NCBI GenBank assembly: GCA_900088475.1
Contig: FLMG01003917.1
Location: 62,001 to 126,000 of the forward strand
Reading direction: 5' to 3'
DNA length: 64,000 nucleotides
Origin: Hyphochytrium catenoides
Lineage: Eukaryota; Protista; Hyphochytriomycota
The position numbers were made by a program, and so were the translations under genes. The notes under the pieces are model-generated. The model was not told the DNA's origin and ran no database searches. It saw nothing but the letters and a program-made list of their open reading frames with translations. Positions 1 through 47,446 of this stretch are shown here, in pieces. Position 1 is the first letter of the stretch; every line of letters starts with the position of its first letter.

Positions 1-3000
1 CAGGAAACAAAATCAAAAAGCGGGAACAAGACCAAGCCAATGGAAGCGAAGTAGAGATAAGAGCTCCTTCCGACAATGAGAAGACAGAAGAGAGTGACTC
101 ACTCTGGTGCGATGACCGACGCACAGTACTTGGCGTTCTCCAATTCTTTCTCCTCTTGTCGAAGNNNNNNNNNNNNNNNNNNNNNNNNNNNNNNNNNNNN
201 NNNNNNNNNNNNNNNNNNNNNNNNNNNNNGTCCGGTAAGCCCGCAATAGTTAACCAGGTAATCAACGATCGCCCAAGTCAAAGAAAGAGAAGGAAGTAGT
301 AGGACAGGAAGGTACTTTAGAGGCGGAAGAGTTGACATCAACGCAAGAGGTATCCATATTTCCTATAGCTCCTAATTAAGACACCCGTCACTCAGCAGAA
401 GGAGGAGCGGTAGGGAGGAGACAGAAAGAGGTTACGCCAGCCAACCATGGAAGGAAGAATGAACGAGTCTGGAAGCTTGATGAAAAAAGCGCACATGTGA
501 CAGACGTCAAGCTGATGGTGATTCCCGCCATACCTGAGTGACCCATTGCTTCACAAACTCTTCCGGATCATGAATTCCTGCCCTCCTCAGCTTTCCTAGT
601 GTCACCAATAATGGGGCACATAGAGCAAGGTGCGAACAGTGTGAAGGAAGGGATAAAAGAAATGAAGAAGAAGTAAGAAAAGAAGAGACAGGTTCTTGAA
701 ATAGGCGTCTTCTTTTACCGATGTGGCTTTCTGAGACTGGTCCGTTATATTCCTCCAGCTTCTTTTTCACCTTGTCTTTCCTTTCATGAGCGATCCCTTG
801 GTGCAGCATGATCCCAGCTTTGACGCGCTGTGGGGCAGTGTGAAGTCCCTGTGGGAGGGGAAGTTCATAGCCGGGGATCACGCATTGCATTTCATGGGCT
901 GCGAGAATTGGGTGGTACGTCACATTGCAAGAGGGAAGAAGAAGGAGAGGCGCTACTAAGGGAAATAGTAACAGAGGACGACATAACCGGACAGGCCCAT
1001 GCAGAGCTCGCAACAAGACATCTCATCAGGTCCAGGGCAGTACCTGTAGCTGGTGTCTGCTCAGTTCATTAGCAACCGAGGCAGAAACACCTTTCGCACT
1101 TAAGCGAGCCCGAAGGTTCCATTCTTGCCTTGAGAGTATCTGGTTCTGCCTCGTCCTCAAGCGGTCGAGCACCTTGAATAAGGGAGAAGTGAAGCGATGA
1201 TAGGGATCACCAAGGGCCGCAGGTTAGAAAAGACGGACAGGGGTAGCTGCTTGATGACCTTCTGTCCTACCTCCTGATGAATTTTCCCTTTTTCCTCAAC
1301 AAGGTCGGAGAGCTTGTTTAACATCTCGTATCCCACTTTCTGCTTGTGTGCGGCCCTTGCCGTTGCTTCGTCTGTCTCTAACAGCTCTTTCTCAAAAGCT
1401 GCTAGCTTGCGCTCGCCCTCTTGCACCAGCTAGGAAGAAGAGAATTATCATGGTAAACTAATAAGAGAGAAACTCAAGGGTTCATGAGGGAAACGTAAAA
1501 GAGAGGCGGAGAGAGGCGAGCAATACTGGCAGACTCTCCACTATCAGCAGCCCTGAAAGGAAGCGCCGGGAGTGTAAACTGAAAAAGGCGGAAAGGACAA
1601 CAATTACCTTTTCGTCCCTAGCTGGATACGTCTCGCAAAGCATGATGATGCTCTGATAGTAGTTTCTCCGTCGCAGCTCGTCTTCGGCTTTGTATTGGGT
1701 CTCCTCTATCTTCTTTTCCAAACTGTGGCTTTGGCTTTCAACCTGAGAAGCAGAAGGAAGGGTGAATAGACAACCACCGGTACCATTATACTAGGTGAAT
1801 ATGGGGCAGCAGCGAGAAAAGTTAGAAGTAATATAATGCATAGAGGCCCTGTGGTTGACCGATCGACCGTACTCTCCCCCTCACTTTCCGTTTGCTATGT
1901 CCTCCCGCTATATTACGTCTGATGAAGCTGCCCACCTGAGGTCCATTGGCGTTAGACCCTGCTTTCAGCTCCTCAGCTGTTCTCTGGCACTTATGCAGTT
2001 CCTCTCTCAAAGTCGCCACTTTCTTTTCCCTTTCTTTAGTCCCTAAATGGAGCTTGTCATAGTCTTGGCGGAGAGACTTTAGCTGGGCAAGAAGGTCAGG
2101 GTAGCTTAAGCAGTTTTTCTTGGCCATTTCCTGAAGAAGTTGCAAAGAGGATCTGGTGTTTGGGAGAACGGGAAGACTCGGTGAGGCGCCCTTCGGGCCA
2201 TCTCCTCCTTGTACCCCCTTCCTTTCTGCTGAAAGAATCCCCCCTGCTGTGCGAAGAGCTCTTGCGGTACGCTAAACAAGAAGAGAGAATAAATACTTCA
2301 AATGCGGAGGAGATCCAGGCGTCGGCGAGGAGGGCCAAGTAACTGTGGTCGTGTGGTGACGCGAGAAGAGAAAGAGGCGACCACCAGAAGAAGAACAAGA
2401 CGGACGGACACTAGAAAGAGTTTGAAAGGCTAGCATACGATGGGTCATTTGTGTGTACGATCAGGCGCAGCATGAGCAGAATGGCTGAGTCGCAATAAGG
2501 TCTGCACAGGATTTGGGCAAATAATACAAGGGAGTATACCTTCTGTGTGAGCAGACTTTTCCACTTTTTATGTGTCTCCTCTCTCTGATCAGGAACTTTG
2601 TCCCCACCAGAATCTTGAGCATACTCCTCAGCCTGCTGCTCTTCTAATATTCCCTCCCTGGAGCCACTGGCTGTTCTGAGAAGAGAGCGGTCATTCAAAG
2701 ACGTGTAGGACGAAGGTGTTGAAATCCTGCTAAATGTGACGCTTGCGTCGTCACTTTGCAGGTCCTGCCTGCCTCCTTCCAATGGAGGAGAGAACGAATT
2801 TCCTAGACTTACTCCCACTGACTCATTAACAGGGGATAAGCCTACACCTCCTCCTAGACCTCCTCCGCCCTTGTCTTTTTTCCCAACTTCCTTGATGCCA
2901 CCGGGACCTTCGCTTAGTGTACCGGACGGCTCTTGTTGCGGTTGCACGATGTAATAGTTTTCCTAAGAGAGGAAGGAAGTCAGATCTTCTATCATCAATA

Positions 3001-6000
3001 TGAGTGCATCTATCGAGAGAAGTTCCATAGACTATGCATCACACAATCGCAGACAAAAAGAAGCGCTCTGCTGCAGGATCTTCTATCTATCGCTACGAGG
3101 GTTTACTGGGGGAACGTCCTAACACGCCAGTGTTTCGGATATTAGTTCCGTCTTATTCCTTGCAGGGCAATCCAACCCTCATCGCGTTTTAACCTCATCG
3201 CTTTTGTCTCGTTTCCCGCCGCTATCTGCCCACGGCATCCAATCGGCTTTGTACCAATCGCCATCTGCCCTCATCCCTTGCCCAGAACCACACTTACAAG
3301 GGTTAGGGCAATCAAGGGAAACTGTACCCAAAGCCATCTCTGTACATAGTAGTCATCTCCTGGCTGCACCACCAGTATATTGTATCGGCTCTTCTTTGAG
3401 GTCTCGACAGGTGCCTGTGCTGTCTTGAGCTTGGGATTAAGCTTGCGTTGCGCGTCTACTAATTCTCGCAGCTGTGGAGCTGGTGGGCGTACGATATCTG
3501 GTGTGCAAAACTTGTCCGTATCTCCGAGTTTACAAGTCCGAAGAAACTCCGCAACCTAGAGTAGTTCACAAGAACAGATATGGAAAGTAGTAGTGTAAGC
3601 CGACAAGAACAGAAAAGTAGTAAAAGCCATCTCCGGATAAAGCCCTGTAGTGCGCTCATCTCAATTCTTTGTTCCATCAACTGACCTTGATAACGAGGTC
3701 AGCAATGACTGCGGGTGGAGGTGTATCATGTGCAAGATAGTCCTCAACTGTCTTGAGGTACTCAAAGACCAAGTCGTTCGAACCCATTTGCTCCCTGCAT
3801 ACTGTCCAATAGATCATGAAGTCATACTTATTGTAGTCAGTCCACCAGAGAAGAAAATCTTTGACATTGACCTACATGGCGAGAAAGACGCGAGGTAAGA
3901 GCGAGGTAAGTAAGAGCAGGTCATGCAAAGGCAGCAGAATAAGATGAGCGAGTGAGGTAGAACAATTTTGGGAAGGGACTATTCAGGAGCCAGATTTTGT
4001 CCATGGTCATTAATATTGGATTGGTTCGTCCGGCTCCTGACTACTCTCTGCACCACCGTCATACTGAAGGTTATCCGTCCCGACGGGAAGATGCTTAGCC
4101 TCTCTAATACTTATGTATGGAGGTCGCCGCGCCCCAAACCCTACCAGCATGGCCTTTAGCTTTCCCCATGACTCGCAGCACTCGAGATGCATAGGAAGTG
4201 CTTCAATCTTTCTCTGACTCGTGGGGAGCCTCATAAAGAACTTTGCTAGCTGTTTATGGTAAGCAGCCAAGAGTCGCTCGTCCTGGTATTAAGAAACATG
4301 ACAAAAGACAGTCAGTTTCAGGTTCGCGTGCTTCCAAACCTGTGCAGACTCTCTCCTTTGTATCCCATCCTCCTTTTCTGTGGCGTAACAAAAAACGTGG
4401 TCCTATCCGTTTATAGCCTGACAAATTCGTTTTCTTCTTCCCGCTTCCTCCTCCCTTTGCGTCTTCAAAATATATACATTATACCTGGAGGTACATGTGT
4501 CGGACAAAAGTCCGGAGTCTATCGTGGTTGAAGTCATATAGCGGGGGCCCGTTGTCCCTTGAGTCTATTGTCATCATCGCCGGGAGAAGCAAGTTCTCAA
4601 TGATCTGCTTCGTATCCCGGAGAATGTTATCCTCAACTAACAGGTGGACTTCGTCGAAGGATAGCCCAAACTTTGCCACTACAAAGAAAGAAAGGAAGTG
4701 CCGCGCCTAGAGGCGGCCATAGTTAGAAAAGTAGGCTTTCTGGACGCGCAGATAAATTTTCATCCCAACTTTACTAGAGACTGACTCGCAGCAGCGCGAA
4801 AGAGGGCGCAAAGGGGAGTGTTTGTGCCGAGTGCTTCACTCAAAAGCTGCAAGGCCAGGGGCGTTGAGAGTACTCGACACAGGTGCGAATGCACACATTT
4901 ATGTCTCAATGCAGCAAAGTGAAAGGCCGCCGCGCAAGAGAGACGTGGAAGAATTGAAGAAGGATGGTTCGGCTGGTCTTTGCTGCCCCTCCCAATAAGG
5001 TGTGCCTACCAAGAGCAGGTGTTGCTGCCTTGCAATAGTCCACTGCGCCCTGTTGAACTCTGCAGGATCAGTAACGTTTCCGAGCAAGCTCTTCACAGTC
5101 TTACTCCAAGCTACAGGCGGATTCTGATGGAGCTGATCATCTTCCCCAGGAGCTGGGAAATGCTGGTCAAAATTTTCCATGACAATGGAGTTCCATAGCT
5201 CCATCACAACCTAAGAGTGGAAAACATTATAAGGATGAGTGCCTCTATAAAAGAGAACCAGGATCTAGTGGTGTTTAAACCCATCACGTTAGGGTCAACT
5301 GAAGCGGAAAGACTTGATCTGTGCCTCTGATGCAAACGCAAAGGTGCTGATCATCACAAATTATGGGAGAGGAGGAAAGAGATAGGTACCAAGAGACCAC
5401 TAGGGAAGCTCGTTAGGATTGGGGACGGAAGTGGAGAGTCGTGGTCTATGTCGAGTAATCGACACATACCTCATACATCTGGTGGATGGAAGTGCTCTTG
5501 GTGAACTTGTCTAAAAGGCCCTCCCTCCACTCCTCCTTAGTATAAGGAGAGCTCAGCTGCTCGAGGACGGTTCTCAAATAAAGAGGACAATTGCTTCCCG
5601 GACTGTTCAGAAGCTTCTCTATCTCGTGTTCATTCAGCTGTTGGTGCGCAACAAGACGCAAAAAGAAGCGGACAACTTAGTAGTTGCGATTACATAATAA
5701 GTTCACTGGTGCTAGGGAGAGTGCTCTGGTGCTCTCAAGTTATTCCTTTTCGTCACCTCAACGACATGTCTGACTTACCTGGCTGCTTGTAGCTCCCCAT
5801 CGGCCTATGCCCTGGGTCTTATTGGGTAGCGTACCCTCGTTGCCACTAAGATGCTCGTTCCAAAGCTGCGGAGTGAAGATTTGTTGAGAAAAGGAGGCCA
5901 AACTGATGATCCAACCGGTATCTCTGCGTCTACAACATCCACTTCTTCCTTGGGCTTTTGTAGATCATCATGGCCATCCTATCATAATACTCACCTGGAG

Positions 6001-14627: not shown

Positions 14628-15662
14628 TCATTCTCCCTTGGTGATAGGATTCCCTCTTCGCGATTCTCCACCCCATTTGCCCTCCGTGTACCGTCGATCG
14701 CCTCCCGGAGGAGCTGAGGAGTCTCTCCTCCTAGCGGTCACTGTCGGTCGCTGGTACGGGTTCCGGAAAGGCCTATCTCTGCCGCCGAACCGCAATTGAC
14801 CAGACTCCTTTTTGCCTCCTGAAAGTGCAAAGGTAAGTCTTCGACCATCACGTCAACATCTACTGGTGATGAGCACAAGGAGCCCTGAAGGCCATAGCCA
14901 ACCCAGGGCACCAAAGAGAGAGAGATGAGCAAAGAAGAGGTCTACCAGGGAGAGGAACAACCATAGACAAAAAGAAGGAGAAGCATTAAGAGAGAGGAGA
15001 TAAGAGAAGTATCCAGACAATCTGGGGTGTAGACTTCCCTACCGAAGCCTCCGCCTAGCCGTCTGGGCTTCCACCCTGGGACTACTCTCTCTCTTTCAAA
15101 CTCCACCAATATCCTGGCTCCATCAATGACCGCCCGGTGGCTTTCTCTGTACGCCATAACGAAGTCCTCCTCTCTTTCATATTCCACAAAGGCGTAGCCT
15201 CGAGATAGTCCGGTAACCACATCTCTTACTAGCCGTAGCGACCTAATGTCTCCGTACCTAGAGAAATGCTGTCTGCTTTCAGACAACATAGAGGTTTGAA
15301 GACAAGTCAGGAGACGATGTCGAAGAGCAGGAGCTGTCTGAACAACAGAGAGGGCGAAGAGAAAGCACAGAGATTGGAGAGCGAAACTGCGTCCGTTTCG
15401 TATGAGCGAAGTATGAGCGAAGTAAGAGAGAGGTTCACGCCGCACAGGTTAATCCGCACCTCAAAGAGTCCTCCGAGGTAGTCACACTTAACCTTCCAAC
15501 GAAGAGAGTCGTGCGCGGGTTTCCCTGTACCTTGGGATCTTTGTTGGGATCGTAGGTGCTCTTCAGCGCTCTGATCAAGCCTCGGTCATGAGGGGTGACA
15601 TCCGTGCCATCAATGCTGCCATTGACCACGGGATCGTACTCAGTAGCGAACCAGAACGCCAT
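14628..15662 (-). CDS. SNRNP35: U11/U12 snRNP 35 kDa protein (minor spliceosome RRM protein), 3 exons
   Basis: [21 protein letters not shown]-terminus; RRM with [25 protein letters not shown] and [19 protein letters not shown]|[18 protein letters not shown]; two GT-AG introns. Confidence 0.93.
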
Positions 15663-16301: not shown

Positions 16302-19300
16302 ATGATGCGCAAGAAGGCGCCACCAGTAGCAGTGGACAGAAGTGCCGGGAAGAAGGCTTACCCTGGCAGCAAAAGCAAAGGCAATGTAGGTTTGGAGAAG
16401 TCAAAGCCTCTGGCCTCTGTCAATAAAGGCAAAGCACCTCCATCCTCCGACCCTAAGAGCAATAGTCATCCTAAGCGGGGCACCACGGCCGCTCAGCCTA
16501 AAGGGACAGCTAGCCGACCGTCCACCGCCAAGAAGAAGGGCACCGGATCGAATAACAAGTCCTTTGGAAAGGAGCGGACTCAAACTCAAAAGCTGATTAG
16601 GAGAGGACCGCTAGAGATAAGAGAGGGTGCTTTGAAGGGAGCTGGAGCTAAAGGGCCCGGGAAAGATGAACCTGCTACTGGCGACGAGGACAAAGTAGAT
16701 GCCGTGGCAGATGTCCAAGGTGAGTAGCTTAAGGTACTATTCTCAGTGTCTGGGGCTGCTAGGATATCCCTCAGTATCTTAAAAGAACTTCTCGATGTGA
16801 GATTGCTCGGACAATGCTGCTGGGTCTCTTGTCGTCCTTCTGTTGAGCGGCCTTCTAGCGTGCCCTTCTTTGGTACAGTCATCCTGTCTGTCTTTGTCCT
16901 AATGCCACTCTCACTTCCAAGAGCTTATTCAAAGGGAGAAGCAGCTTTTGGAGGTACAGCTGCAAGAACAGGAAAATGAGGCTCGTGAATGGAAGCAACG
17001 CTACCATGCCCTTAAGTCACGATATCCAGATCAAGCAGATGACATTCGACCTGGAACGCTGGTCTTGTCTGCTGACGCAACAGCAACCGTTCTCCAGTCC
17101 AATGTAAGTGATTGTGAACGGCTGGTTGATAAAGGAATGGGTCCCACTGGTGAGTCAAATTGCCGGCGGCCAGTGGAAGTGAGCGGCAAAGGAGAGGGTG
17201 AGCCATGGGAGGGGGATGACTGACTTTGCTTGAGGAGGTCCGCTGGCGGAAAGGGTGCAGAAAGTAGAGCATGCCAAGAGTGGCTGTAGGGACCTAAGCT
17301 TATCGTCAATGGCTCCAGCTTTCCGATCCCGCCCAAGCCACCTGGAATAGGTTCTTAAAAGAGNNNNNNNNNNNNNNNNNNNNNNNNNNNNNNNNNNNNN
17401 NNNNNNTTGAATCCTACTATCCGCTTTCCTATACAGTCCTCGAGTCCACCATAAGATTGACGGGACGACGACGGAGCTAGGGAAGAACCCGGAAGAAGAG
17501 GAGGGATTCTTTGCATCCACCTTTCTGGACTTCTCATGCGCTTTGCCTGGACGACAAGGTTTAACGCGAGTCATCAGGCATCTTAGCCAGTTTAGAAACC
17601 TGCAGATCATCGTGCTAAGGGACTGTGGGCTGGATGACTCGTGTGTCAAAGATCTTGGTATCGACTTTTGGGCTTGACTTGTCTCCGTTGCTGTCTCCTT
17701 TCGCTTGACGTGATCGACACTTGTGTATTGCTGCTGGGTGTCTTCTTGCCTTTGGCTTCTTTCCTTTATCCAGCTTGGCTTAGCTAAGTGCTCCACTTAG
17801 CCTTACCCTGGTATCAGGCTTTTGTGTGTCTGCTTAGCTACCGTGCTCTGATTATCATGCCCCTGCTCAGCCCGTTTCTAACTCGTATGCCTCGTTAGGT
17901 TTCCTCTTTTCGAAAAGGCTAGTGGGGCTCGACCTTTCCCACAATGCACTTGGGCTCAGTGCCGCTAGATGTCTGACAGAGCATGTGCGCACAAGTCGAC
18001 ATCTTACCTGGCTTAGCCTGCTTGGCAACTCATTCTCCCATCTCCCGGGAATGGGTGCCTTGTGGGCCGAAGGTAAGGGCTAGACATAAGGATGTAAACC
18101 TCCTCAGGCTTCCGATCCCTGCCTGCTTCAAACTTCTCCGGCATCTTCCGATCCTACACTGGTTCCAGAGGGTTACTCCTATTCTTTGCCTTCGACAATG
18201 GCGTTCAACTCTGGAAGGATGGAGCGTCAACATCTCCGTGCATGTAACCCCTAGTTCCTCAACTTACCTGATCCTATCTAACCTAACTAAAAAATAATAG
18301 CTGGGCGGCTAAGACCTATGTGTCCTCCGTTACTTTCTTCTAATCTCGATTATGTCAGCTGTTGGAGGTAGCACTTCACTGAAACATTTGCGGATTAGTT
18401 TGGCTGACTTTTCTCAACCTTTGGGAGCTAATGAGTTGAACGCTGAGGCTTTTGCCTCCATCCTCGGGGTAAGATAGATATCTCACGGGCGAATGTTCGC
18501 AAATGAGGCCATCTCCTACTCATACGCTGACAACTAGTCCGCGTAGGAAAAATGGAAAGAAGGTGCAGGTCTTGAAGGACTCACTCTAGGGCACGCACAG
18601 CTGTCTGGAAGGTGAGAAGGTTTGACAGCAAGTGGAAAACTGGTTACCAACTTCGCTTGGGTCGGAGCTTTATGAATAACCTCCTCTCCTCTTTGGCTTT
18701 TGACATGCCGTGCAGAACCTCCGTACTTGTGGCCAAACTGCTCTTGAGTGAAAGGCTGACATATCTAGACTTAAGCTTTGCTTTCTTAGGGACAGCCAAT
18801 GTTCAGGTAAGTAGCTGCCATTCTTAGACTTAGAAGGTTATTATCACGTACTGTCTACCGCTAGTTTGACAGATTTAAGAGTACATGCTCCCGCTCCATC
18901 ATGTGATCTGCTGTTCTTTATTATACCTTTTCCCATTGTCAATTGGCTCATGCACTCTGCCCAGTCCACCTATGGAGGCTTTGCTTCCAAAGCTATTTTT
19001 TCTTCACCGCGTTGCTGCTTTAACATGTCCCTAGTGCAAGTCAGCGGCAATTGTCCTTATCAGCTTGTGTTGGTAACTGTTAGACTCTTGTACGAGCTGT
19101 CGAATGGCATCAGCAATCGATGGTGAGCGCCTCCCAACTGGTTGGACTGAACCTTAAGGGAAACTTCATTGGAGACTTTGGCGCCAAATCTGTAGCCAGG
19201 TTAATCCGGGTACGGTCACCTAGATGACATCACATTTTTGCTGCCATCGCTTTGGTGAGCTTGCCTCAACTCTTTCTGGCGGTCGATTAAGCTCTTCCTG

Positions 19301-21539: not shown

Positions 21540-24500
21540 TTATAGCATTAGCTCCCTGGCAAGGGGCAATTCTCGCAAGTCAATCAATTGCAGCCAAGGA
21601 GCCAGGGCGATAGCATCGTCAGTCAACCACGACACCAAAACTGAAAGAGAAAGATGGTCTGAGGCTCGTGGTAGCGCGTCGACTAATTCGTCCGCTACTC
21701 GCTCAGCAACCAGATCCGGAAGAGTAGAAGGAGAGGAAACATCCGTCATCCAAGAGACAGTCTTTAGCAAATCCTTTATCAGAGGGCGAATAGTTGAAAG
21801 AGACAAGGAAAGCGGGTCTAAGAGGGACGGCGATGCCATATCACTTTCCCTCCGCAAGATTCTGCTGATTCTACTCAGTTTGGCTTCCACTGCCGAAGAA
21901 GACAGCATGATCAAAGCACATGAAAGTGAAGTTACTGGGGCCATTTGCACATCCTCTCGTTCGTCTTCTGCAGGTTGAGGTGGAGAAGGCGACGCAGAGG
22001 GAGGAAGAGCAAACGTTTGAAAAAGAGAGGAGAGCACCGCCTCGATGAAGATATCCTCTCTGGCTCTCCCACTTCCAAAATGCGCGAACATCAGCCTTTC
22101 AAGGGACAGAAGAAACGAGGGAAGTGTGATGTAGCCGGCAACTACTTCATTCTTGCTCAGTGCCTCGTGCACGTCATCTGGGGTGAGGAGGTGAAGCCCC
22201 GTCCGCATCAGAAAATAGAGAAAGCGTAAGGAGGAGCGGAGAGAGAAGCTGATAGTATCCTCGCTGTGGCTGCCTCCTTCCGCGAGAAGTGGGTACGATT
22301 CGAATACCTGAACAACAAGCAGACAAACAGTAGGAGATGGTTAAGAAAGACAATGACATGCTTATAGGGCAATGGTCCTCTAAGTCCTCACAGTCGCTCA
22401 AGAAGGAAAAGTGGCCAAAGCGCGAACAGGACAATCAAACGCATCTGTCATGGGACGATGGCATTGGAATAATGTTGAAAGAGATCTTTGTACCTTGTCC
22501 GTGCCTTGGGTAAGTAACTCCTCTGTATGAGCCATAGAAGGTGGAAGGGGCCATTTGTCCCCTGAAAGAAGCTCAAGAAAATGGACGAACTCCCATCCTT
22601 TCTCCGTGTACCATTCAGCAAACTCTTGGAATCGGATGCCGTCTATCAGAAATGGACGAAGCAATCGATCAAAATCAGAAAGCGGTGTTAGAAGTAAATG
22701 ATAGAGTATAGGCATTCCATTGAGGCCTCATGAAGTACCAATCGTTATTGTCACCACCATGTCCTCCGAGGAGGAGCCAGAATATGTACTCCATTTCGAG
22801 ACATCAAGAGAAAGAGGGCTAGACGGGAAGAAGACAGATGACTTTTTGAAGCGAGCAAGAAGAAGAGAAACTGTTTATGAAGATTACTAGCCGGAAACTT
22901 GGCTGCCACATAAAGCCGTCACGTAACACTAAGAGTATTATAAACACGAGGAATGGGGATAGTAAGATCAGTCAGGGAGCCACCCAAGGCTTTCCACTGC
23001 ATCGTTTTTAAGGTTTGGACTAACCTGATCTCTTGGTAGGGACGTCTCGACGGATGAGGTCTGTCAGCTGGCGAGCCGTGGCGTCCGCTACCTCCCGCTG
23101 TCGTGAGACGGACGCCTCGGGGTCTCTTGAAAAATAAAAGAGCGCGCAGAGTATTGAACGAAACAGCTGGAAAAGGTTCTCAAATGTGACCACTTTGTCC
23201 ATCTCTCCGTCCACCTCAGACGCCAATGACCTCTCCCCTTTGTTTTCAAATAATCGGAAACAAGCTTCAAACTTCTCGCTCTTGCTTCCCCTGCAGAGTA
23301 TGGCCAGACCGCAAAGCAGAGGTGGAGCCTCAACCATGGCGTCATTGTTCCGATCGAAGGCGTGGAAGAGAGAAAGAAGCACTACACAGAGAAGGTGCTG
23401 CTGGACGTCCGTCAGGTTCTCTGTCGATGGAAGGAGCAGCTCGAGTGTCTCCAAGAACTCTTCTCTGGTTATTACTGAGAAGGATGTGGGGATGGTCGAG
23501 TTGGCAGCCTTAGAGGAAGAAAGAAATGCATCAGAGACTTCCGAGAGCGTTCTTTGCTTTAACCCCGATAGCCTAAGCAACACATGGGCCTGTCAGTATT
23601 TATGTCCTTCAGGACACGATACAGAACGCTGGCATATTAGAACACCTGAGTAAGCACTGAACAAAAATCGAGAGACGACGAGAAAGCAGTGGACCTAGCC
23701 AATAAAGCTGGATATGTTTGGACACAGCAAAAAAAGACGATGGCGTTGCTACCCATTAGCTGCACACAGCCCACTGCCACTTTCTGAAAGAAAGATGTGT
23801 GACAAAGCCTTTGAGTAATACGCCTCATGAATCATCTACTTCATTTGTACGTTGAGGTCCCTCTCACTCATCAGACTCACCTTGACACTAAGGCAATAAT
23901 AGCGGAGCTCTTCTCTCTAATCTGGAGGTATTCACCTTCAGGAGAGAGTCCAAATTCAAAGATCAAACCATTGAGATCAGGGAACAGCTCTATTGGGTTC
24001 TCGTCCGGGGAGGACGTGGTGGAGGTAGGGAAAGACAGATTAGAAAGAGGAGGTGATACGTGCTCTGCATCTTGTGGAAGCAGCGTCCACCACTTATTGA
24101 GATCTAAAAGCTCGATCCATTGCATCGAATGTCTTCCAAAGGTTCCATACCAGAAGGAGAACTGGTCAAAGCTAATCCACTTTTCCTCCTCGCCGTTGCT
24201 TTCTTCAAATATTTTCGCCGTGCTCTTTATTGCAGCTTTGTCCACTGTCTCTATAACTAAACTCGAAGGGGCATCACTTCCTGTCGTGACCGCAAAGACA
24301 ACGACCAGAAACGCCCTCAAGAATCTCCACATCTGTCTGCGGGAGAGATAACCGGCCTCTCCTCGTTCTCCGCTCCTCTCCAAAAGTGAGAATGCGGCAG
24401 CTAGCTTTTCGCTCTTCGTCCCAATGCAGAAAAAGAGAAGGGCGATGGTGACTTCGCTCATGTTAGCGAGTCCCTTTGAATGACGATCAAAGAGTCTAAA

Positions 24501-27500
24501 TATCCGTAAGAGATTGCGAGAGGTAAGCGCTGATAGCACCGTGGACGAAGAGGTAGAGTATTGGGAGAGGATAGAAGAGACGAGCTCTTCAAATATATCC
24601 TCCGACACTTGACCCTTTCTGTCGACTAAAAAGAAAGTTTGAGAAGATAATAAGGAAAGGGCATAAAGTTAGATCAGACTCTCTTCAAGATCCATTGAAA
24701 ATACCAAGGGACTTTGACCAAGACAACGAGACTTTAGTGATATCGACATGAGGGTATCACAGACAAGGCCAACTCAGAAGCATTTTTGGAGTGTTAAGGC
24801 AGTGAGCTCGACAGACAGGAGGGAGAAAGATATGGCCAGCAAGGCTTAGGGACCTTCATTGGAATGCGATAGCATACTTTCCGCATCAGTCTCTACAACT
24901 ACTGGCGACATCGCATAATGCTTCTTACCGGTGAGGCTCTCAACCATGTCGAGAAAGTCTGGGACTCTGAGGCTCTTGAAGCCACTCTCGGAAACAAAGT
25001 CTTTAAGGTCTGTTATATGAGACTTCTTAATCTGAATGACGTCATCCTCGTTTAAAGGATCAAGCTCTAGCTGGAATACGAAGTCCTGAACGCCAGTTCG
25101 GAGACACAAGAAGTGAGCCGACAAGGATCATAGGAGGAATGAACATTTGAGCGTGGGTGAGGGATAGGTGGAGGAAAAGAACCAACTACTCTGCAGTTAA
25201 TTTAATGAGGACCGCGGATAGGAGTATCCGCGGATAATCAAGGAGCAGAAGGGAGATGTGACTAACATGCGGTGTTTCCTCCATTGGAGCCGTGCCGTTC
25301 GCTCTGAAGTTGATATCGCCAATTCCTCCCCATTTCCGAGCATCTACCAGCTCAAGAAACTGAAAGAGGGAGGATCCCCCGCTATTGTACCTGATTGATG
25401 AACAGCGTGGGTCAAAGGGAATTAGGGCGCGTAAAGGAAAACCGACTGATCGAAGAAAGGCGTGTTTGTAAGTAGAACAGGACCGTCCATTTAAGGGAAA
25501 AGGCAATAAGAGGTCTCAGGAGTAGAACTGCTGACAATGCAGAAGCATAGGGATAGGGCGGACCCTAGCACGCCACCGACCAGCTTCCAAAGCCATCGAA
25601 GGATATCCGGCCATCTGCCGAGCAGAATCGATCAAACTCTCGGGTCGACTCTAAATATGACTCTACCTTCCTGTGGCTGGAATGATACTCTGACTGGGTG
25701 GAGAGCGATAGGTGAGTGACGGATGTCGGTGGGAACAAGGTAGCGAAAGTAAGGAGACAGAAAGTCAGCTAGCTAACCCTCCCTCAAGAGAACCTTTCCT
25801 TCAGTGATTCGAGCTCAAAATGTCTGAAAGGGTGTCGGAATCCCCTTCTCCGATGTCGCTCTTCATACACCCCGTTCTTGTGGCCCAAACTCTAGGTATC
25901 AATCGACTTCGTGTGAATATTTATCTATTGTCGCGTACCTTGTTTGACGCAAAGAATGAGACAGCGAGGAACGTCGCAGATAGAAAGCCTTGGAACTGAT
26001 TGAGGCTAAGGGTCCCGACCCCATCTTCATCGAAGAGATCGAATATCTGAGGTAGCTTTTCACTCTTCTTTCCATGAGTTAAAAGGGAAAGGAAAGTAGA
26101 CGCCCACTCCGTCAATAGCTGGCCAGACTTCTGGTTGAGGACATAAAAGCTATAGAGGAGGAGGAGAAGTGGGTGGCACTGACGGCCGCGCGTGCCATGC
26201 TGGCCAGCCTCCACTAACAGAGAGGGTAGGAGCTCTACCAGTGCATCCATAAATTGGAAACCATCCAAGGAAGTGGCTGATGAGTGTTTCAGGACTGTCT
26301 GGAAGGGATGAAGAGGTCCAGTAGGTTAGGTGAATAGTTGAGTAGGTCGGAAAGAGGGAAGCTATGAACTAGATCCAGGCACACTTTCTAAGGTGACGTG
26401 ATACAAGCTGGAGCTAAGGATCTTGGGTATAGAGTCTGACGGTGCCGGATTCCACGAAATTTGAACCAAGATCTTACCTCAAGCACCACGGAACAGGATC
26501 TAGACTTGAGCTCAAACAGATCTAGTAACATTTCTACAGCCTCCACACCATCCTTTGAGACTGTGAGCTTTACATCAGACCCTACACTCATCTCAAACTG
26601 CTCCTTGACGCTGCCAAACTCCTCTAGTGGAGAGGAGAGCGAAGGGAAAACCGAGAATAGGAGGGACAGCCACGCATCCCATTCTGGAGATATGGCGTTG
26701 CTTCTCAGGAACCAACTAGACTCCAAACAGGTTGTCCACGTGCTCGGGGTCAGAGGTCCGTACCAGCTGAGATGGGACAGATAATCGAACCACCTAGCGG
26801 ACCGAAATCCGACTGAAAGAGGGAAGTGAGGCGACCAAGAGGGGCAGAAATTAGTGCCAGCTAGAGCGGATCAACCAGGCACGTAGAGATACAATACCAC
26901 ATGATAACGAGGAGTATTGGGCACAGAATGATAAGACGCAGTTCAAATTGAAAGGGGACGAGCGGTACTCACCCTCGGAGAACCATTCCATGAAGAGCTC
27001 GAATGAAACCCTAGTGTCGCCTTCTGTTATTCTGGAAACAGACTCTTGCACCTCCATTCCATAAATGTCGGCCGCTCTGTCTGCGATCATTCGAACCTGT
27101 GCAGTCTTTAGAATAGTGGGTTGGCGTCAGGGAAGAGAGCTCTGAGTACGGTCCTAATAGCTAGGGAAGGAAGGAGCAAACACGTGGAGGGAGTGACACC
27201 CAGCGAACTATGAGCGTGCTAAGGATAAAGGCGGGAAGGTGACAACCTTCCAGAACAGCAAGGTAAGAGCGCACCTCAATATTGGGCACAGCCAGCACCA
27301 GGAACGCAGTGACTAGTACTTTAAACATGCGCTTTAGTGCCATGAAGTCCAGTCCTTGGTCCTCGGATGCGGGAAAGACCTTGAATATGTGAAGAAACTT
27401 CTCTTCGATATTGCAGTCAAAGAAGATGGACCAGACGATGTGGCACTGGGTGCAGAGAGCAAAGGTCCGACGTCGCACAAAGATAGAAAAAGCGTGAGAT

Positions 27501-31937: not shown

Positions 31938-32240
31938 TCTCTTTCTCTCTTCCTCTCTCTTTCTCTCTTTCTCTCTCTCTTTCTCTCTTCCTCTCTCTTT
32001 CTCTCTCTCTCTCTCTCTTCCTCTCTTCCTCTCTTTCTCTCTTTCTTTCTCTCTCTCTTTCTCTCTTCCCCTCTCTTTCTCTCTCTCTCTCTCTCTTTCC
32101 CCATCTCTCTCTCTCTCTTTCTACATCTCTCTCTTTCTCTCTCTCTCTGTCTCTCTTCTCTCTCTCTCGTAGCTATTTTCCTCCTGTATCCCTGTGATCG
32201 CACCAGCACTGCACCCGCTCTCTCTCTCTCTCATTCTCTT
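31905..32240. repeat. Imperfect (CT)n microsatellite tract
   Basis: Long ctctct/ttctct run, seen directly. Confidence 0.95.
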
Positions 32241-32710
32241 TCTGTAAGCTGTATCAACAAGAGACGAGAGCTTCAGAACCTTCAGAACCCCCACAGCTGC
32301 TCCACATTCTTCAGACTCCATCAAGCCTCGCGCAAACGTTGCCGCTCACGTCCTCCTCCGCCTCCTAGCCGCCCGGCCATTGGACATGAGATCAGATGTT
32401 TGACTACCCTGATGCTGTCCAGAGCTAGGAACTAGTAACAGATGAAAGGAGATCGTCGGCTTTTCACTATCTTGGAAACACTATTGAATTGAAGCAGAAA
32501 GACGACACCAGCGGACTGGCAGGACTGAAGCTTAACTGGAGACAGACAATTATTGGGTTGCCTGAGAGCTTTATTATATGCTCAGGCCATTCCAGGCTGC
32601 CGCAGCGGCCTAATCTGGCTTACGAGTCAACAAGTAGACGGTCTCAGGCTGGTTGTCTAAGCATCAAGTGAGAAGAATACCGTGGAAGAGCAAAAAACAG
32701 AGAAGATACG

Positions 32711-35700
32711 ATGGGCAATCAACACGGCTCGACGGGCCAAAGGCCCCGCGTAGTTATTATTGGTGGCGGCTATGCTGGGACTGCCGTCGCGAAAGCCCTG
32801 GACGCCGAGTTCAACGTGGTTCTTATCGAGAGAAAGGAGTTCATGCTGCACAACATCGCAGGTCTTCGGGCTTGCGTGCGCCCTGGCTGGGAGAACTATG
32901 TCTGTATTCCATATAACAAACTGCTCAAGCACGGAGTGGTCGTGCGCGGTACCGCTGTCGGGCTAAACGCGAGCGAACAGACAGTGATTGTGCAGGAAGA
33001 GTCTTCAGAAGAAGTGGTGCGCTATGACTTCCTTGTGATGGCGACAGGTTCTATCAATGGCTTTCCAGGGAAGTTACCCGTGAATGTGATCAGCAAGGAG
33101 TGGACTCAAGAGCTCTATAGAAGCACTCAAAAGGCAATTCAAGCCGCTAGAAATATCCTCATCGTCGGAGGTGGACCCGTTGGTTGTGAACTTGCTGGCG
33201 AGATCAAAAGTACGCACCCATCCAAGACTGTCTACCTAGTGCACAATACGACGGCGCTGTGCAATAACACGCAGCCACCTCTGCCAGACAAGTTCAAAGT
33301 GAGGCTCCTTGATCAACTTCGCAACCTAGGCGTCCAGGTTTTGATGAATGACTATCAAATCAACGCCGAGATTGAGGCCCGCTTCGGTACCAAAGTGCTT
33401 GAAGATGAGCTTTTCATCAGTGGGACCGAAATGGTATTGACCACTGACAGTGGTAGGGATTTCACGGCGGACCTGATATTCCGCTGCTTAGGCAACAGAA
33501 GAGGAAGCGACCTTGTAGACACCACGTGGCTCAATGCCAAGGGGCAGATCAAGGTGAATCAGCACTTGCAAGTGCTAGGACGGGGCAACGAGAGAATCTT
33601 CGCGTGTGGAGACATTAACGATGTGCCAGAGAGCAAAATGGCCTACTACGCTGCTTCTCAGGCCAAGGTGGTGGCCAAGAACATAACCAGGATGGCTCAG
33701 GGCAAGATGCGACTATCAGAGTACTCTCCCGCTAAGTACACATCTATTCTAGTCCCTGTCGGGCCGGAAGGGGGCTCCTCCGTGCTTGAAGGTTACTATG
33801 TAGGCCCTTTCATGACTGCCAAGATCAAGTCCCATGAACTTTTTGTGCCCAAATATTGGGGAGATCTGGAACTGCCAAACCCATTCAATAGCGTGATTCC
33901 GATGCAAGAGACACGCTTTACCCTGGTCAAGGAACTGGATAGACCTGGTATGCCTCTTCTTTCATCGCCATCTAACAAGCCGACCGTGGTGATCATAGGC
34001 GGAGGGTACGCGGGAATAACGGCAGCTCAAGAGCTGGATCAGACTGCAAATGTTGTTGTAGTGGAGAAGAGAGACTTCATGCTGCACAACATCGCGGGTC
34101 TGCGTGCCTGTGTGCGGAATGGATGGGAAAGTTTTGTCTGCATCCCGTATACTCGTGCTCTGAACTTCGGCAGGGTCATCCGCGCCACGGCACGGCATAT
34201 CGACCCACGGTTGCGCAGTGTGATAGTGGAAGATTCTTTCACTCAGACAGAGCTGAAGTACGACTTTTTGGTGCTGGCAATGGGAAGTGCCAACGGCTTC
34301 CCTGGTAAACTTCCCGGCAGTGTTATGGAGCGACAATGGACACTTGAGCTCTATAGAAGCACGCAAGACGCCATACGGGCGTCGAGGAGTATTCTTATTG
34401 TAGGGGGAGGGCCTGTCGGTTGTGAGCTAGCAGGGGAAATTCGCACAGTCTACGGAGACAAGCAGGTGACGCTCGTGCATAACTCTTCCAAGCTCTGTAA
34501 CAACGCTCAACCCCCTCTTGGCGAGAAGTTCAGCAAGAGCCTTCAAAAGCAGCTGGAGGACGTAGGGGTGGACGTGGTGTTAAATGATCAAACTATCATC
34601 CAGCAGCTAAACACGTTGTTTGGACGGAAAGACCTGGATGAGGAGCTGTACATAGCTGGACAGATAATCACGGTTACCAAACAGAGCGGACAAGAGGTGA
34701 CTGCTGACCTAATTTTTCGATGCGTGGGCAACAAAAGAAGCAGTTTAGAGGTCGAACCGCATTTCCTGGACAATCATGGTCAGCTACGCGTGGATGAGTA
34801 CCTCAGACTGGCTGGTACAGACACAGTCTTTGCCTGCGGGGATGCTAACGACGTTCCCGAAAGCAAGCAGGCGTACTTTGCCGCGTTACAGGCCAAGAGA
34901 GTGGCAAAAAACATTATGGCATTAGCTGCTAACCAGCGATTGTACAGATATTCTCCTGCTAAATCGGGCAGCATGCTAGTGCCCGTGGGGGAGAAAGGAG
35001 GCGCCTCAGAGCTGCAAGGGTTTTACGTGGGACCATTCCTAACGTCCAAGATAAAGTCAGCAGAGCTCTTCGTAGGCACGTATTGGAAGCAGCTAAACTT
35101 TGCAGAAGCCGGCGTCGATCCTTCCTCCGACGAGGTAGCCTTTCTCTCTCGTTCTAGCCGACAGCTGAGTACCTCCTCCCGCTCGTCTTCTGCTGGAACC
35201 CTTTGGGGCGTCCCTGCAGAGAAGCTAAAAGATGGCAAGGAGGTTGTAGTGGTGGGCGGAGGGTATGCAGGAGTGGAGGTGGCCAAACTCCTGGACCCCT
35301 ATATGACTGTCACTCTTATCGAGAGAAAGGAGTTCATGCTGCACAACATATCTTCGCTCCGCTCTTGTATAGTTCAAGGGCACGAGATGTACTCATGTGT
35401 CCCTTACTCTCGCCTTCTCAAGCGTGGGCGTGTACTGAAAGGCTCTGTGGTGGCAGTGGCTCCACTTCTAAAGACAGTGACTGTGGTGGACGATATATCT
35501 GAACGAGAGATAAGCTATGACTTCCTGGTCCTTTGTACAGGCTCGCTCAACGGCTTCCCTGCAAAGATGCCTGCCAATGTTTTGACCAAGAATGTGACCT
35601 TCGCTTTGTACAGGAGCTGCCAGGATGCTGTGAGGGTGGCGGACTCTGTCCTGGTGGTAGGTGGTGGGCCTGTAGCCATAGAGCTAGTAGGGGAAATCAT

Positions 35701-36385
35701 CGCAATGTACCCCGGAAAAAGGATATATCTTGTGACCAACGCTTCGCACCTACTGAATAACACGACGCCGCCAGTTTCAACCAAGGTAAAAGACAGGCTC
35801 CTCCAATCACTCTCCACACGAGGCGTGAAGGTGATTTTCGATGACCGAAAGGTCCATGAGACCCTGCTAGAGACTTTCGGCCGAAAGCAGCTGGAAGAGG
35901 AACTGTTTATCAAAGGAGACGGACTGATCTTTACCACTGATAGCGGCGTAAACATCCAAGTGGATCTCATCTTCCGCTGTGTGGGGAATCATCTAAACAC
36001 TGAGATCTTCGATCCAAAGTGGAAGGACCAAGACGGCCGTCTGAAGGTCAACAGGCATTTGCAGGTGCAAGGATACAACGACATCTTCGCGGCAGGCGAC
36101 ATCACCGACATTAAAGAGTCAAAGCTCGCTTTCTACGCACAGAACCATGCTAAAGTGATCGCCAAGAATATTCGGGCATTGGCAGCAGGCAAGACCTCGC
36201 TCTCGAGATACAGAGCGCCGACGCAATCCAGTATGCTCGTCTCTCTCGGACCTGGGGATGGTGCCTCTGAGCTGCAAGGCGTGTTTGCTGGTGCCTTCAT
36301 CACTGCGAAGCTGAAGAGCAATGATCTGTTGGTAGGGAAGACGTGGTCTGATCTAGGCTTCCAGCGGCCTGGTGTTGCTGGGTGA
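32711..36385 (+). CDS. Intronless 1224-aa protein of three tandem FSP1/AIFM2(AMID)-like FAD-dependent NAD(P)H oxidoreductase units with an N-terminal myristoylation motif
   Basis: Three copies of VVxxGGGYAG (about aa 13, 426 and 845), each followed by ExxxFMLHNI, YDFLVxxxGS, VGGGPV[G/A]xEL[A/V]GEI, IFRC[L/V]GN, [I/V]FA[C/A]GD, PESK/KESK and T[A/S]K[I/L]KS. N-terminus is MGNQHGS. Confidence 0.93.
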   Translation: MGNQHGSTGQRPRVVIIGGGYAGTAVAKALDAEFNVVLIERKEFMLHNIAGLRACVRPGWENYVCIPYNKLLKHGVVVRGTAVGLNASEQTVIVQEESSEEVVRYDFLVMATGSINGFPGKLPVNVISKEWTQELYRSTQKAIQAARNILIVGGGPVGCELAGEIKSTHPSKTVYLVHNTTALCNNTQPPLPDKFKVRLLDQLRNLGVQVLMNDYQINAEIEARFGTKVLEDELFISGTEMVLTTDSGRDFTADLIFRCLGNRRGSDLVDTTWLNAKGQIKVNQHLQVLGRGNERIFACGDINDVPESKMAYYAASQAKVVAKNITRMAQGKMRLSEYSPAKYTSILVPVGPEGGSSVLEGYYVGPFMTAKIKSHELFVPKYWGDLELPNPFNSVIPMQETRFTLVKELDRPGMPLLSSPSNKPTVVIIGGGYAGITAAQELDQTANVVVVEKRDFMLHNIAGLRACVRNGWESFVCIPYTRALNFGRVIRATARHIDPRLRSVIVEDSFTQTELKYDFLVLAMGSANGFPGKLPGSVMERQWTLELYRSTQDAIRASRSILIVGGGPVGCELAGEIRTVYGDKQVTLVHNSSKLCNNAQPPLGEKFSKSLQKQLEDVGVDVVLNDQTIIQQLNTLFGRKDLDEELYIAGQIITVTKQSGQEVTADLIFRCVGNKRSSLEVEPHFLDNHGQLRVDEYLRLAGTDTVFACGDANDVPESKQAYFAALQAKRVAKNIMALAANQRLYRYSPAKSGSMLVPVGEKGGASELQGFYVGPFLTSKIKSAELFVGTYWKQLNFAEAGVDPSSDEVAFLSRSSRQLSTSSRSSSAGTLWGVPAEKLKDGKEVVVVGGGYAGVEVAKLLDPYMTVTLIERKEFMLHNISSLRSCIVQGHEMYSCVPYSRLLKRGRVLKGSVVAVAPLLKTVTVVDDISEREISYDFLVLCTGSLNGFPAKMPANVLTKNVTFALYRSCQDAVRVADSVLVVGGGPVAIELVGEIIAMYPGKRIYLVTNASHLLNNTTPPVSTKVKDRLLQSLSTRGVKVIFDDRKVHETLLETFGRKQLEEELFIKGDGLIFTTDSGVNIQVDLIFRCVGNHLNTEIFDPKWKDQDGRLKVNRHLQVQGYNDIFAAGDITDIKESKLAFYAQNHAKVIAKNIRALAAGKTSLSRYRAPTQSSMLVSLGPGDGASELQGVFAGAFITAKLKSNDLLVGKTWSDLGFQRPGVAG

Positions 36386-37272: not shown

Positions 37273-38930
37273 TTAAGAGAAGTGCAATGGGCTTGCAACT
37301 AAATGGGTCTTTTGCCGCTGCCAATAGCAGTGGCATAAGGTCACGAAGCNNNNNNNNNNNNNNNNNNNNNNNNNNNNNNNNNNNNNNNNNNNNNNNNNCC
37401 TTACCTTGCCCTTGGAGGCGCCATCTCCGACGTAGACTGCGTCGTCAGCAGGCCAAGAGGTCAGGCGGAAGCGCTCGGGTTGCTCATTGGCGGCATACTC
37501 GGTATCCTGCGTGGCACTGCCGCTGTCCCTTCTCTCTCTGCTTCCTTTCTTGTGATCCTTCCACTGTTTATAGAGCATCACATCTGAAGCTGGCGACTCC
37601 GTCTGCCATCTGAAGGGATAGTTTAAGAAGGTGCTGCTTCTCAATACTTTTGCGTGGCTCAAAAGCACCAACTTGTGCGGCGGAACCTCCTCAAAGATCT
37701 GCAACGCATCCTGAATCGCTGCCTCCACATCCAACTCCGGTGGAAGCTTTGATAGAAAGTTGTGCACAGCCGAGAATTCGCATTCACAGAGAAGTAGCTT
37801 GTCCTTCCTTTGCAGGACGATCGCGGCCGAAACATAGAGCGAAAAGAGTGGATGAGTAGAGAGAAAAACGTCGAAGAGTCTGCCGACGACGTCAAGGTCA
37901 TTGATGTGGTGCGAGAACCAGGTCAGGACCCACGGAAGAGCAAAGTATGGTTCTATCCCTGAGGCCTGGATAAACTGGTGGACCTCCTTATCTCTTTCCT
38001 CCAGAAGCGGAAAGAGCATACGAAGAATCTCTATCACTTGGACGAAGTTCGGTCTCATGCACTCCCTAATAGGGAATTGGCTCACTCTTTCTGCCATCTC
38101 GAAGGCTACTTTGTCATCGTGCATGAGAAGGAAGACCGTACAGATGTCGTGGAAGCCTTGATAGTACTTTAGCGCCGGATTCTGGCTAATGACAGCGTTC
38201 ATGATGTCAAAGAGCTGCTGACGCTTCAACTTTCTCTCCCGCTAGGTAAAAGAAAGCGACCAGGGATAGAAGAGGCGAGAGCAGGGAAATGAGAATATAA
38301 GGTTATTCATCTTCTTCAACATCGCATGTGTTACTGCCTTACCTCTTTCATCTTGCCAAACTGCTTAAAGTGGTAGAAGGAGCGGTCGACATCCTTCCAT
38401 AGCTGCTGGGCGTCCGGATGGTCAGTGACGAACCGGTGGTAGTCCGCAGCCTCATAGCGATTAATGCCCAGAAGCTTGGGCCATGCGCGCTGTCTAAAGC
38501 CCGTGTTTAGCAGACCCCCAGGGCTCAGAGCTAATTGGCGCAGCAGAGGCACATCAACCTGGGAAGGTGAGGCGAAGGAGAAGCAAGAAAGGCATAGGAA
38601 GAGACGGAAGCAGACGGGGCACGTAGGTCAAGTGGAGGAAGCCTCTGGGATTACCATTGAAGGGACCATCTATAGCTAAGTGAGTAGAGAATCATTCCAG
38701 GAATGTGCAGAGTGAGCCATCCACGTAATGAATTAGCGGGTTTACAAGGGTCATACCGGGTTACTCTCAAGTGCCTCATTGATTAGAAGCCGTCGCTTCT
38801 GCAGTTGGCTAGCGGAGAGGAAAGCTTCCACCTTGTACTCCATTAACAAGGTTCCATCGGTGGCAGAAGCCTGTACAAGGTCCCGGCTGGGAGCGCCAAC
38901 GCTCCTGCGAGGTTTCTTCTTCTTTGTCAT
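37273..38930 (-). CDS. TBC1D20: TBC-domain Rab GTPase-activating protein, TBC1D20/Gyp8-like, 3 exons
   Basis: GGLLNTGFRQRAWPKLLG, arginine finger LWKDVDRS, glutamine finger LKYYQGFHDI and PYFALPWVLTWFSH. The C-terminus crosses an N-gap at 37350-37398. Confidence 0.88.
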
Positions 38931-46693: not shown

Positions 46694-46915
46694 TTTCCTT
46701 CTCTCTCTCTCTCTCTCCCTTTCCTCCTTTGTCTGTTTGCCAGTCTCTCTCACATACTCCAACCCCTCTTTCTCTCTGTCTCTCTCTCAGTCTGTCTCTT
46801 TCTTTCTCTCTCTCTCTCTTTCTTTCTCTCTCTCTCTCTCTCTTTCTCTCCTTTCTCTGCCTCTCTTTCTCTCTCTCTCTCTCGTTGGCTCTCTCTCTCT
46901 CTCTCTCTCTCTACT
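46619..46915. repeat. (CT)n microsatellite tract
   Basis: Seen directly. Confidence 0.95.
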
Positions 46916-47235
46916 TATATAGCGATGTCTTCCACTACAGCTCAGTCTATCTCTCTCCTTGTCTGTCCGGACTCGCTCAGTCTCCCTTCTCCTCTCTCTC
47001 GGCAAGCATTCTCCAGCATCCTCTCTCCGTCTGTCACGCTGTCTGTTCTGTCTCCTCTTCTTCCCCCCTACGGCACTGGTCTGATGATTGCTGCTACACT
47101 TGCTCCACCGGCCCACTGCCTCTCTTCTTGACATCGCCAGAGGAGGAATGGAAGCAACAGCTGAAGCAACTTGGAGAGAGGACGACGCGGAAGCCCGTTA
47201 GGCGAGAGGCAGAGCAGCTGGTTCTGGGAAGAGGA

Positions 47236-47282
<47 letters not shown>
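47236..47282. repeat. (GA)n microsatellite
   Basis: Seen directly. Confidence 0.95.
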
Positions 47283-47286
<4 letters not shown>

Positions 47287-47446
47287 ACGCAAAAAGGAGT
47301 GAGAGCAGGACGACCATCAAGCGAACACAAGAAAAAAAGAAAAGTAAACACCTCTGATAGCGGAAGGAAGATAGCTCGATTGACAGGAACAACTTTGTAA
47401 GAAGAACGACACGCTAGCCGCCAGGAACTTGTTCTCTTCTCGGTCG

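Follow-up and report, generated by a model that had tools for sequence, protein, structure and literature searches.

A single uninterrupted open reading frame (ORF) in the genome of Hyphochytrium catenoides encodes three complete units of the FSP1/AIFM2 family on one predicted protein, referred to here as tri-FSP1, which is a real, unusual, and new domain architecture of a well-known enzyme family. The ORF was found in a 64,000-nucleotide stretch of contig FLMG01003917.1 (positions 62,001 to 126,000, forward strand), which was analysed as a whole and is called the window below. The best explanation, which we consider likely with all its parts taken together, is that an FSP1/AIFM2-type gene was triplicated in tandem long ago within this lineage and fused in frame, and that tri-FSP1 is a genuine nuclear gene of an intron-rich protist, probably a stramenopile, encoding a trivalent quinone reductase tethered to the membrane.

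As a drug target, FSP1 has received much study, and it is disputed whether its active form is the monomer seen in the human crystal structure or the domain-swapped dimer of chicken, which has two lipid anchors (PMC10896247, PMC10516921). A gene that has kept three complete and conserved FSP1 units on one chain over long evolution is a ready-made test object for the stoichiometry, the packing, and the per-unit activity of this enzyme. In addition, FSP1-type quinone reductases that start with a leader carrying glycine at position 2 (Gly2) exist well outside the animals, which bears on the age of membrane-quinone protection against lipid peroxidation. Should the three units not be produced as a single chain, the locus would be no more than an unusual tandem array.

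The frame comprises 1224 codons and a TGA stop and contains no intron (Table 1). It is by far the longest ORF in the window, where 3 ORFs in 64 kb reach at least 250 amino acids, and with stop triplets at a frequency of 4% the probability of 1224 open codons arising by chance is ~2e-22. Three Pyr_redox_2 stretches were assigned to the product by Pfam, and the repeats are spaced on the DNA by 1236 and 1257 nucleotides (nt), each divisible by three. An earlier note, made from the sequence alone, had described this ORF with its three full units, and its account of the layout was borne out: the unit starts that it gave correspond to residues 12, 423, and 843, where the first beta-strands of the units lie, and all of its motifs were located in the three units, namely GGGYAG (residues 18, 430, and 849), GGGPV (153, 565, and 984), GD (300, 710, and 1129), and K[IL]KS (371, 780, and 1200). 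The motif for binding of reduced nicotinamide adenine dinucleotide (phosphate) (NAD(P)H) reads GGGPVG in units 1 and 2 and GGGPVA in unit 3.

Family assignment and intactness of the three units

When each unit was compared separately with all PDB sequences, every one of them matched the solved FSP1 proteins (tetrapod-ancestor, chicken, and human) over essentially the whole chain with E-values of 1e-40 to 1e-55, followed by other families at 1e-5 to 1e-7 (CoA-disulfide reductase, ~1e-7; Ndi1, ~5e-6; NADH oxidase; and putidaredoxin reductase). An AlphaFold model of unit 3, built on a 127-sequence alignment, reached a predicted local distance difference test score (pLDDT) of 95.4 and a predicted template modelling score (pTM) of 0.93, and a Foldseek search with this model placed FSP1 entries at the top (template modelling score (TM) 0.93, root-mean-square deviation 2.1 Å), with NDH-2 at ~0.71. 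All three units belong to the FSP1/AIFM2 family, as the earlier note had proposed, with both sequence and predicted fold far nearer to solved FSP1 than to any other family.

Membership in the NDH-2/Ndi1 family, which the earlier note had named as the outcome that would speak against its assignment, was rejected (E ~5e-6, TM ~0.7, and no glutamate at the adenine-ribose position). In NDH-2-type enzymes, a glutamate replaces the histidine at this position (PMC10516921); units 1 and 2 have a histidine there, unit 3 has a threonine, and none of the three has a glutamate. NDH-2 (yeast Ndi1) and AIF resemble the FSP1 family in their two-Rossmann flavoprotein fold, in their monotopic association with membranes, and in a chemistry that leads from NAD(P)H to quinone, but they match the units much more weakly (E ~5e-6; TM ~0.6–0.7 vs. 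0.93 for FSP1), and their C-terminal domain differs.

In comparison with the vertebrate FSP1/AIFM2 structures (human 8WIK, 8JSC, and 8YO8, chicken 7XPI, and tetrapod-ancestor 9IFT), each unit aligns over approximately residues 6–367 and has both Rossmann motifs, the FSP1-type C-terminal domain, the E156–K355 pair, D285, and K293 (human numbering). Units 1 and 2 also share the Y296/F360 quinone clamp, and the Gly2 leader likewise stands just ahead of the first strand. In contrast to the vertebrate proteins, to which the identity is ~25–35%, tri-FSP1 has three units per chain instead of one, its units 2 and 3 have no free N-terminus for myristoylation, and unit 3 carries threonine, phenylalanine, and leucine at H174, Y296, and F360 together with a GxGxxA NAD(P)H motif.

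The intactness of the units was assessed against 230 single-unit homologues, in which 40 alignment columns are conserved at ≥85%. Unit 1 keeps 40, unit 2 keeps 39, and unit 3 keeps 37 of these 40 columns. With human residue numbers transferred through HMMER alignments and then checked by script, all three units were found to contain equivalents of R54, K118, E156, D285, K293, and K355, and H174 and the Y296/F360 quinone clamp are retained by units 1 and 2. The claim of three complete units made in the earlier note thus holds for the cofactor and catalytic residues, which are retained in every unit. In solved FSP1, a salt bridge at the flavin joins E156 to K355, the ribitol is held by K118 together with D285, and K293 touches the NADH ribose, and chicken R53A, which corresponds to human R54, is almost inactive (PMC10516921, PMC10896247). 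Roles have also been described for the Y296/F360 quinone clamp and the E156–K355 pair (PMC10896247).

The most divergent unit, unit 3, has A989 in its NAD(P)H motif GxGxxG, T1009 for H174, F1141 for Y296, and L1207 for F360, and its hairpin reads GVFAG as opposed to G[YF]YVG. Each of the four altered states occurs in natural homologues (among the 230: H174T in 8, Y296F in 31, F360L in 23, and GxGxxA in 3), and for this reason unit 3 looks, from its sequence, like a variant and not like a dead copy.

Origin of the probable fusion and search for precedents

At the protein level, the units are 56% (1 and 2), 50% (1 and 3), and 46% (2 and 3) identical, and their DNA is 61–75% identical even over the best-conserved segments. 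A maximum-likelihood tree of 62 sequences (quick search, midpoint root) united the three units in one clade with a Shimodaira–Hasegawa-like approximate likelihood ratio (SH-aLRT) support of 99. This clade is separate from the actinobacterial one and lies in a part of the tree that is rich in eukaryotes and includes FSP1-like proteins of echinoderms and hemichordates; around it, the deep branches form a polytomy, so that the tree does not settle orthology with animal FSP1. As the synonymous sites are saturated, the proportions of nonsynonymous (pN) and synonymous (pS) differences are given instead of the rate ratio dN/dS, and these are 0.30–0.40 and 0.74–0.82, respectively, between units. The single, well-supported clade, the identities of 46–56%, and a pN well below the saturated pS show that the triplication is old and lineage-specific and that purifying selection has acted on every unit since.

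The genes adjoining the tri-FSP1 ORF are visibly broken into short exons. Horizontal transfer from bacteria was considered as a cause of the missing introns in tri-FSP1 and rejected, as the units fall outside the actinobacterial clade and the G+C content at third codon positions (GC3) is native. The GC3 of 0.59 lies within the range of the neighbouring exons (0.53–0.64), which argues against a recent foreign origin of this intron-free gene.

The same data bear on the suspicion that the locus is silent or artefactual, that is, an assembly error or an unexpressed relic which is still open. The three short N-run gaps in the window, which mark a draft assembly, and the absence of the protein from the public gene collections searched would fit such a case. 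However, the DNA of the units is too divergent for a collapsed or expanded repeat, which makes such an error unlikely, and the ORF itself is free of gaps. Moreover, each unit is under purifying selection and keeps 37–40 of the 40 invariant positions, and the codon composition is native. We therefore consider a silent or artefactual locus highly improbable, and the mis-assembly that the earlier note had allowed for is not supported by units which are only 61–75% identical in DNA and an ORF without a gap.

Whether the three units form one gene or three is a question on which the reading frame itself is informative. The spacings are multiples of three, neither linker contains a stop codon, and unit 3 has no methionine close to its first strand. 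If the units were three independent genes in tandem, a shared frame (1/9) combined with ~82 open linker codons (0.96^82, ~0.035) would be expected with a chance of ~0.004, an estimate of our own that is based on the 4% stop frequency, and the open frame would have had to last while the synonymous sites became saturated. Taken together, these features of the sequence favour a fused coding unit. A different possibility is that the units are expressed independently, with internal transcription or translation starts giving proteins of one or two units and the long ORF being functional occasionally or never. M414 in linker 1 is one candidate for such a start, as the stretch that follows it, ending in NKPTVVIIGGG, resembles the N-terminal leaders of single-unit homologues; unit 2 may once have had a start of its own here, of which M414 would be a relic, or M414 may be an internal translation start. 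Comparable tandem copies in Lagenidium are also separate genes (see below). Still, units 1 and 2 end without a stop codon despite the saturated synonymous sites, all three units stand in one frame with the low tandem-gene chance given above, and unit 3 lacks a candidate start methionine near its first strand, which leaves independent expression as an unlikely explanation.

Another possibility is that tri-FSP1 is a polyprotein precursor, translated as a whole and then cleaved within the linkers to release three monomers of the FSP1 type. In that case, myristoylation and membrane binding would be limited to the first product, and the remaining two would be either soluble or sent to other destinations. 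Some protists, among them Euglena and dinoflagellates, have nuclear genes for polyproteins built from repeated units, and both tri-FSP1 linkers are predicted to be unstructured (pLDDT <50) and hence protease-accessible. The known polyproteins of this kind carry conserved short linkers, though, whereas a repeated conserved linker or cleavage motif was sought between the tri-FSP1 units and not found: the two linkers differ in both sequence and length, and together with the C-terminal tail they have no motif in common at which cleavage could recur. There is also no organelle-targeting presequence, the Rossmann fold starting at residue 12. Processing of a polyprotein thus appears to have a low probability, and we favour a fused protein that stays in one piece.

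No precedent for three units was found in the searches. HMMER was run with residues 12–1210 against all 1.84 billion representative proteins, where a three-unit protein would top the list of summed scores, and none was present. A word-indexed search with the full length returned no near-identical or three-unit protein, an exact look-up of the 1224-residue product in public gene calls gave no record, and none of 52 pattern matches was confirmed in a scan of metagenomes for close relatives. Searches of the literature likewise brought up no account of an FSP1 with several units. The statement in the earlier note that this architecture is not known from characterised proteins therefore stands within the 1.84 billion representatives and the literature searched.

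The best HMMER hits were four two-unit proteins of 684–818 amino acids, from Lagenidium giganteum (DAZ96028.1, 818 amino acids), Polyrhizophydium stewartii (KAJ3418385.1), Synstelium polycarpum (a EukProt model), and MetaClust (UPI00043ED52C); a fifth two-unit model, from Cannabis sativa (G4B88_014060), was found via the word-indexed search. Like tri-FSP1, each of these annotated models places more than one Pyr_redox_2 unit on a single predicted chain, and the units are of the same superfamily as those of tri-FSP1. The paired units are in all cases each other's closest relatives, which indicates that the duplications are lineage-specific. The oomycete and chytrid two-unit proteins belong to a clade other than that of the tri-FSP1 units, and none of the five models has three units.

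Three of these models were rejected as precedents for a fusion when their junctions were inspected. DAZ96028.1 merges two genes of L. giganteum via a predicted intron, although both are complete ORFs that begin and end with an ATG and a stop of their own. In this region (NSDO01000284.1:670-5203), FSP1-like genes are located at 670–1848 (−), 2558–3736 (+), and 4031–5203 (+), the latter two being the merged ones. The junctions of the MetaClust and Cannabis models also look merged: in UPI00043ED52C, the protein's own start MTRIVIVGGG recurs at the unit junction, and in G4B88_014060 a piece of an unrelated domain lies between the units. Two-unit models are thus probably merged tandem genes, at least in part, as directly shown for Lagenidium. 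Two-unit fusions are without solid precedent, and the uninterrupted three-unit frame is unique within what was searched.

Predicted membrane anchoring and packing of the units

The earlier note had pointed to MGNQHGS ahead of unit 1 only. This heptapeptide fits the PROSITE pattern PS00008, G-{EDRKHPFYW}-x(2)-[STAGCN]-{P}, and within the chain it is found at the start only. An MG leader fitting the same pattern ~10–15 residues ahead of the first strand is present in 63 of the 230 single-unit homologues, including deuterostome and rotifer FSP1-like proteins. Because tri-FSP1 has the same layout as these homologues, its N-terminus can be read as complete and of the lipid-anchored type. The start codon also has an A at −3 and a G at +4.

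With such an anchor, the preferred reading can be drawn as follows. After the ancient, lineage-specific tandem triplication of a gene for an FSP1/AIFM2-type NAD(P)H:quinone oxidoreductase and its in-frame fusion, the product would most likely be one chain of ~134 kDa made from a single mRNA, in which one myristoyl group at the N-terminus would serve as the anchor and two flexible linkers of ~36 and ~46 residues would connect three units, all of them competent in catalysis. Every unit would hold a separate flavin adenine dinucleotide (FAD), would accept hydride from NAD(P)H, and would pass it on to ubiquinone or a similar radical-trapping quinone in the membrane, so that one anchor would bring three active sites to the membrane. 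The antioxidant role suggested in the earlier note is a putative one. An FSP1 unit is self-contained: electrons pass from NAD(P)H to FAD and on to a quinone, which reaches the site from the side of the membrane. The electron relay between units that the earlier note had also suggested is not supported in view of these self-contained paths and of the low confidence in packing (pTM 0.52).

The fusion may, in addition, hard-wire oligomerisation. Chicken FSP1 is a functional homodimer with a C-terminal domain swap, in which a hairpin of this domain completes the pockets of the partner and both subunits direct their N-termini towards the membrane, forming a "dual anchor" (PMC10516921). If pairing matters in tri-FSP1 as well, the odd number of units would give one intrachain pair and leave one unit for interchain pairing; two units might pair within the chain and the divergent unit 3 between chains, with which its GVFAG hairpin is compatible without being proof. 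Alternatively, unit 3 may have a slightly different nucleotide or quinone preference. A more specific version, in which tri-FSP1 is a tethered FSP1 oligomer with divided labour, has units 1 and 2 forming the intrachain pair and unit 3 either using another reductant or quinone or serving as a bridge into a hexavalent membrane assembly. The special role of unit 3 follows here from its changes at the nucleotide site (H174T and GxGxxA) and at the quinone clamp (Y296F and F360L). We regard this version as possible but rather doubtful; if true, nature would here provide, for the first time, evidence that oligomerisation is important enough in FSP1-type enzymes to become genetically fixed.

Several points weigh against the preferred reading. 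Position 6 of the Gly2 motif is a glycine and not the favoured serine or threonine, so that lipidation of tri-FSP1 is plausible, not assured, on the evidence of the motif. In principle, a further exon from upstream might be joined to this one at a site between the start codon and the TGA at 32669. As regards conservation of the fusion, no orthologue from a related species was found in the metagenome scan or in the word-indexed and HMMER protein searches. The oligomer argument has the chicken structure as its sole basis, and for human FSP1 a monomeric mode of action has been reported (PMC10896247). Finally, the AlphaFold packing model that the earlier note had proposed did not yield a confident arrangement of the units: the full-length model (pLDDT 80, pTM 0.52) has three folded units and both linkers below a pLDDT of 50. 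In this model, MAFFT had placed all single-unit homologues on unit 1, leaving units 2 and 3 nearly without alignment depth.

An architectural analogue, although no relative, is a phosphagen kinase that likewise has three complete catalytic units of one enzyme per polypeptide and is associated with the cell membrane. It differs from tri-FSP1 in belonging to an unrelated family with unrelated chemistry, in being an animal protein, and in that its expression as a single chain has been shown experimentally. According to the title of Quest et al. 1997, as cited in PMC3080659, myristoylation of this kinase is needed for its efficient association with lipids.

The locus and its surroundings

The features of the tri-FSP1 gene and of its surroundings in the window are listed in Table 1.

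Table 1. Coordinates of tri-FSP1 and of other features in the window
Feature	Position	Strand	Residues	Remarks
tri-FSP1 ORF	32711..36385	+	1–1224	Single intron-free frame
In-frame TGA	32669..32671	+		42 nt 5' of the ATG; bounds the N-terminus within this exon
N-terminal leader MGNQHGSTGQR	32711..32743	+	1–11	Candidate N-myristoylation motif with Gly2; fits the PROSITE pattern
Unit 1	32744..33868	+	12–386	Complete, FSP1-type; aligns with FSP1 chains 6–362, E 1.7e-54; 40/40 columns; key residues R53, K121, E160, H178, D301, K309, Y312, K373, F378
Linker 1	33869..33976	+	387–422	~36 residues; pLDDT <50 in the full-length model
M414 and leader-like stretch	33950–33976	+	414–422	In linker 1, just before the first strand of unit 2
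Unit 2	33977..35098	+	423–796	Complete, FSP1-type; E 5.3e-55 to FSP1; 39/40 columns; key residues R465, K533, E572, H590, D711, K719, Y722, K782, F787
Linker 2	35099..35236	+	797–842	~46 residues, serine-rich; pLDDT <50 over model residues 790–827
Unit 3	35237..36382	+	843–1224	Complete, most divergent; E 1.8e-52 to FSP1; 37/40 columns; E156 equivalent E991
Assembly gaps	165–229, 17364–17406, 37350–37398			Short N runs
RRM ORF	14942–15445	−		
Adjoining ORFs	23020–24608	−		187 and 243 amino acids
(CT)n microsatellite	32001–32243			Long, imperfect; ~470–710 nt 5' of the tri-FSP1 start codon
TBC1D20-like exon	37273–38229	−		Convergent with tri-FSP1
CT/GA-rich tract	46729–47400			Example

The short N runs are assembly gaps that characterise the contig as a draft scaffold. 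They leave the tri-FSP1 ORF untouched, the closest one starting at 37350, inside an exon for a TBC1D20-like Rab-GAP that is convergent with the tri-FSP1 gene. The closest named relatives of this exon are oomycete proteins with 41–48% identity, a weak hint that the genome is that of a stramenopile. Upstream of tri-FSP1 lies a long imperfect (CT)n microsatellite, and similar CT/GA-rich tracts are found elsewhere in the window.

Two further regions on the reverse strand contain ORFs. Two adjoining ORFs are seemingly paralogous exons with a common repeated pattern, which, judged by the translations alone, is possibly EF-hand-like. Another ORF contains a stretch of an RNA recognition motif (RRM) that may resemble the 35K protein of the U11/U12 small nuclear ribonucleoprotein, which, if correct, would point to a minor spliceosome in this organism.

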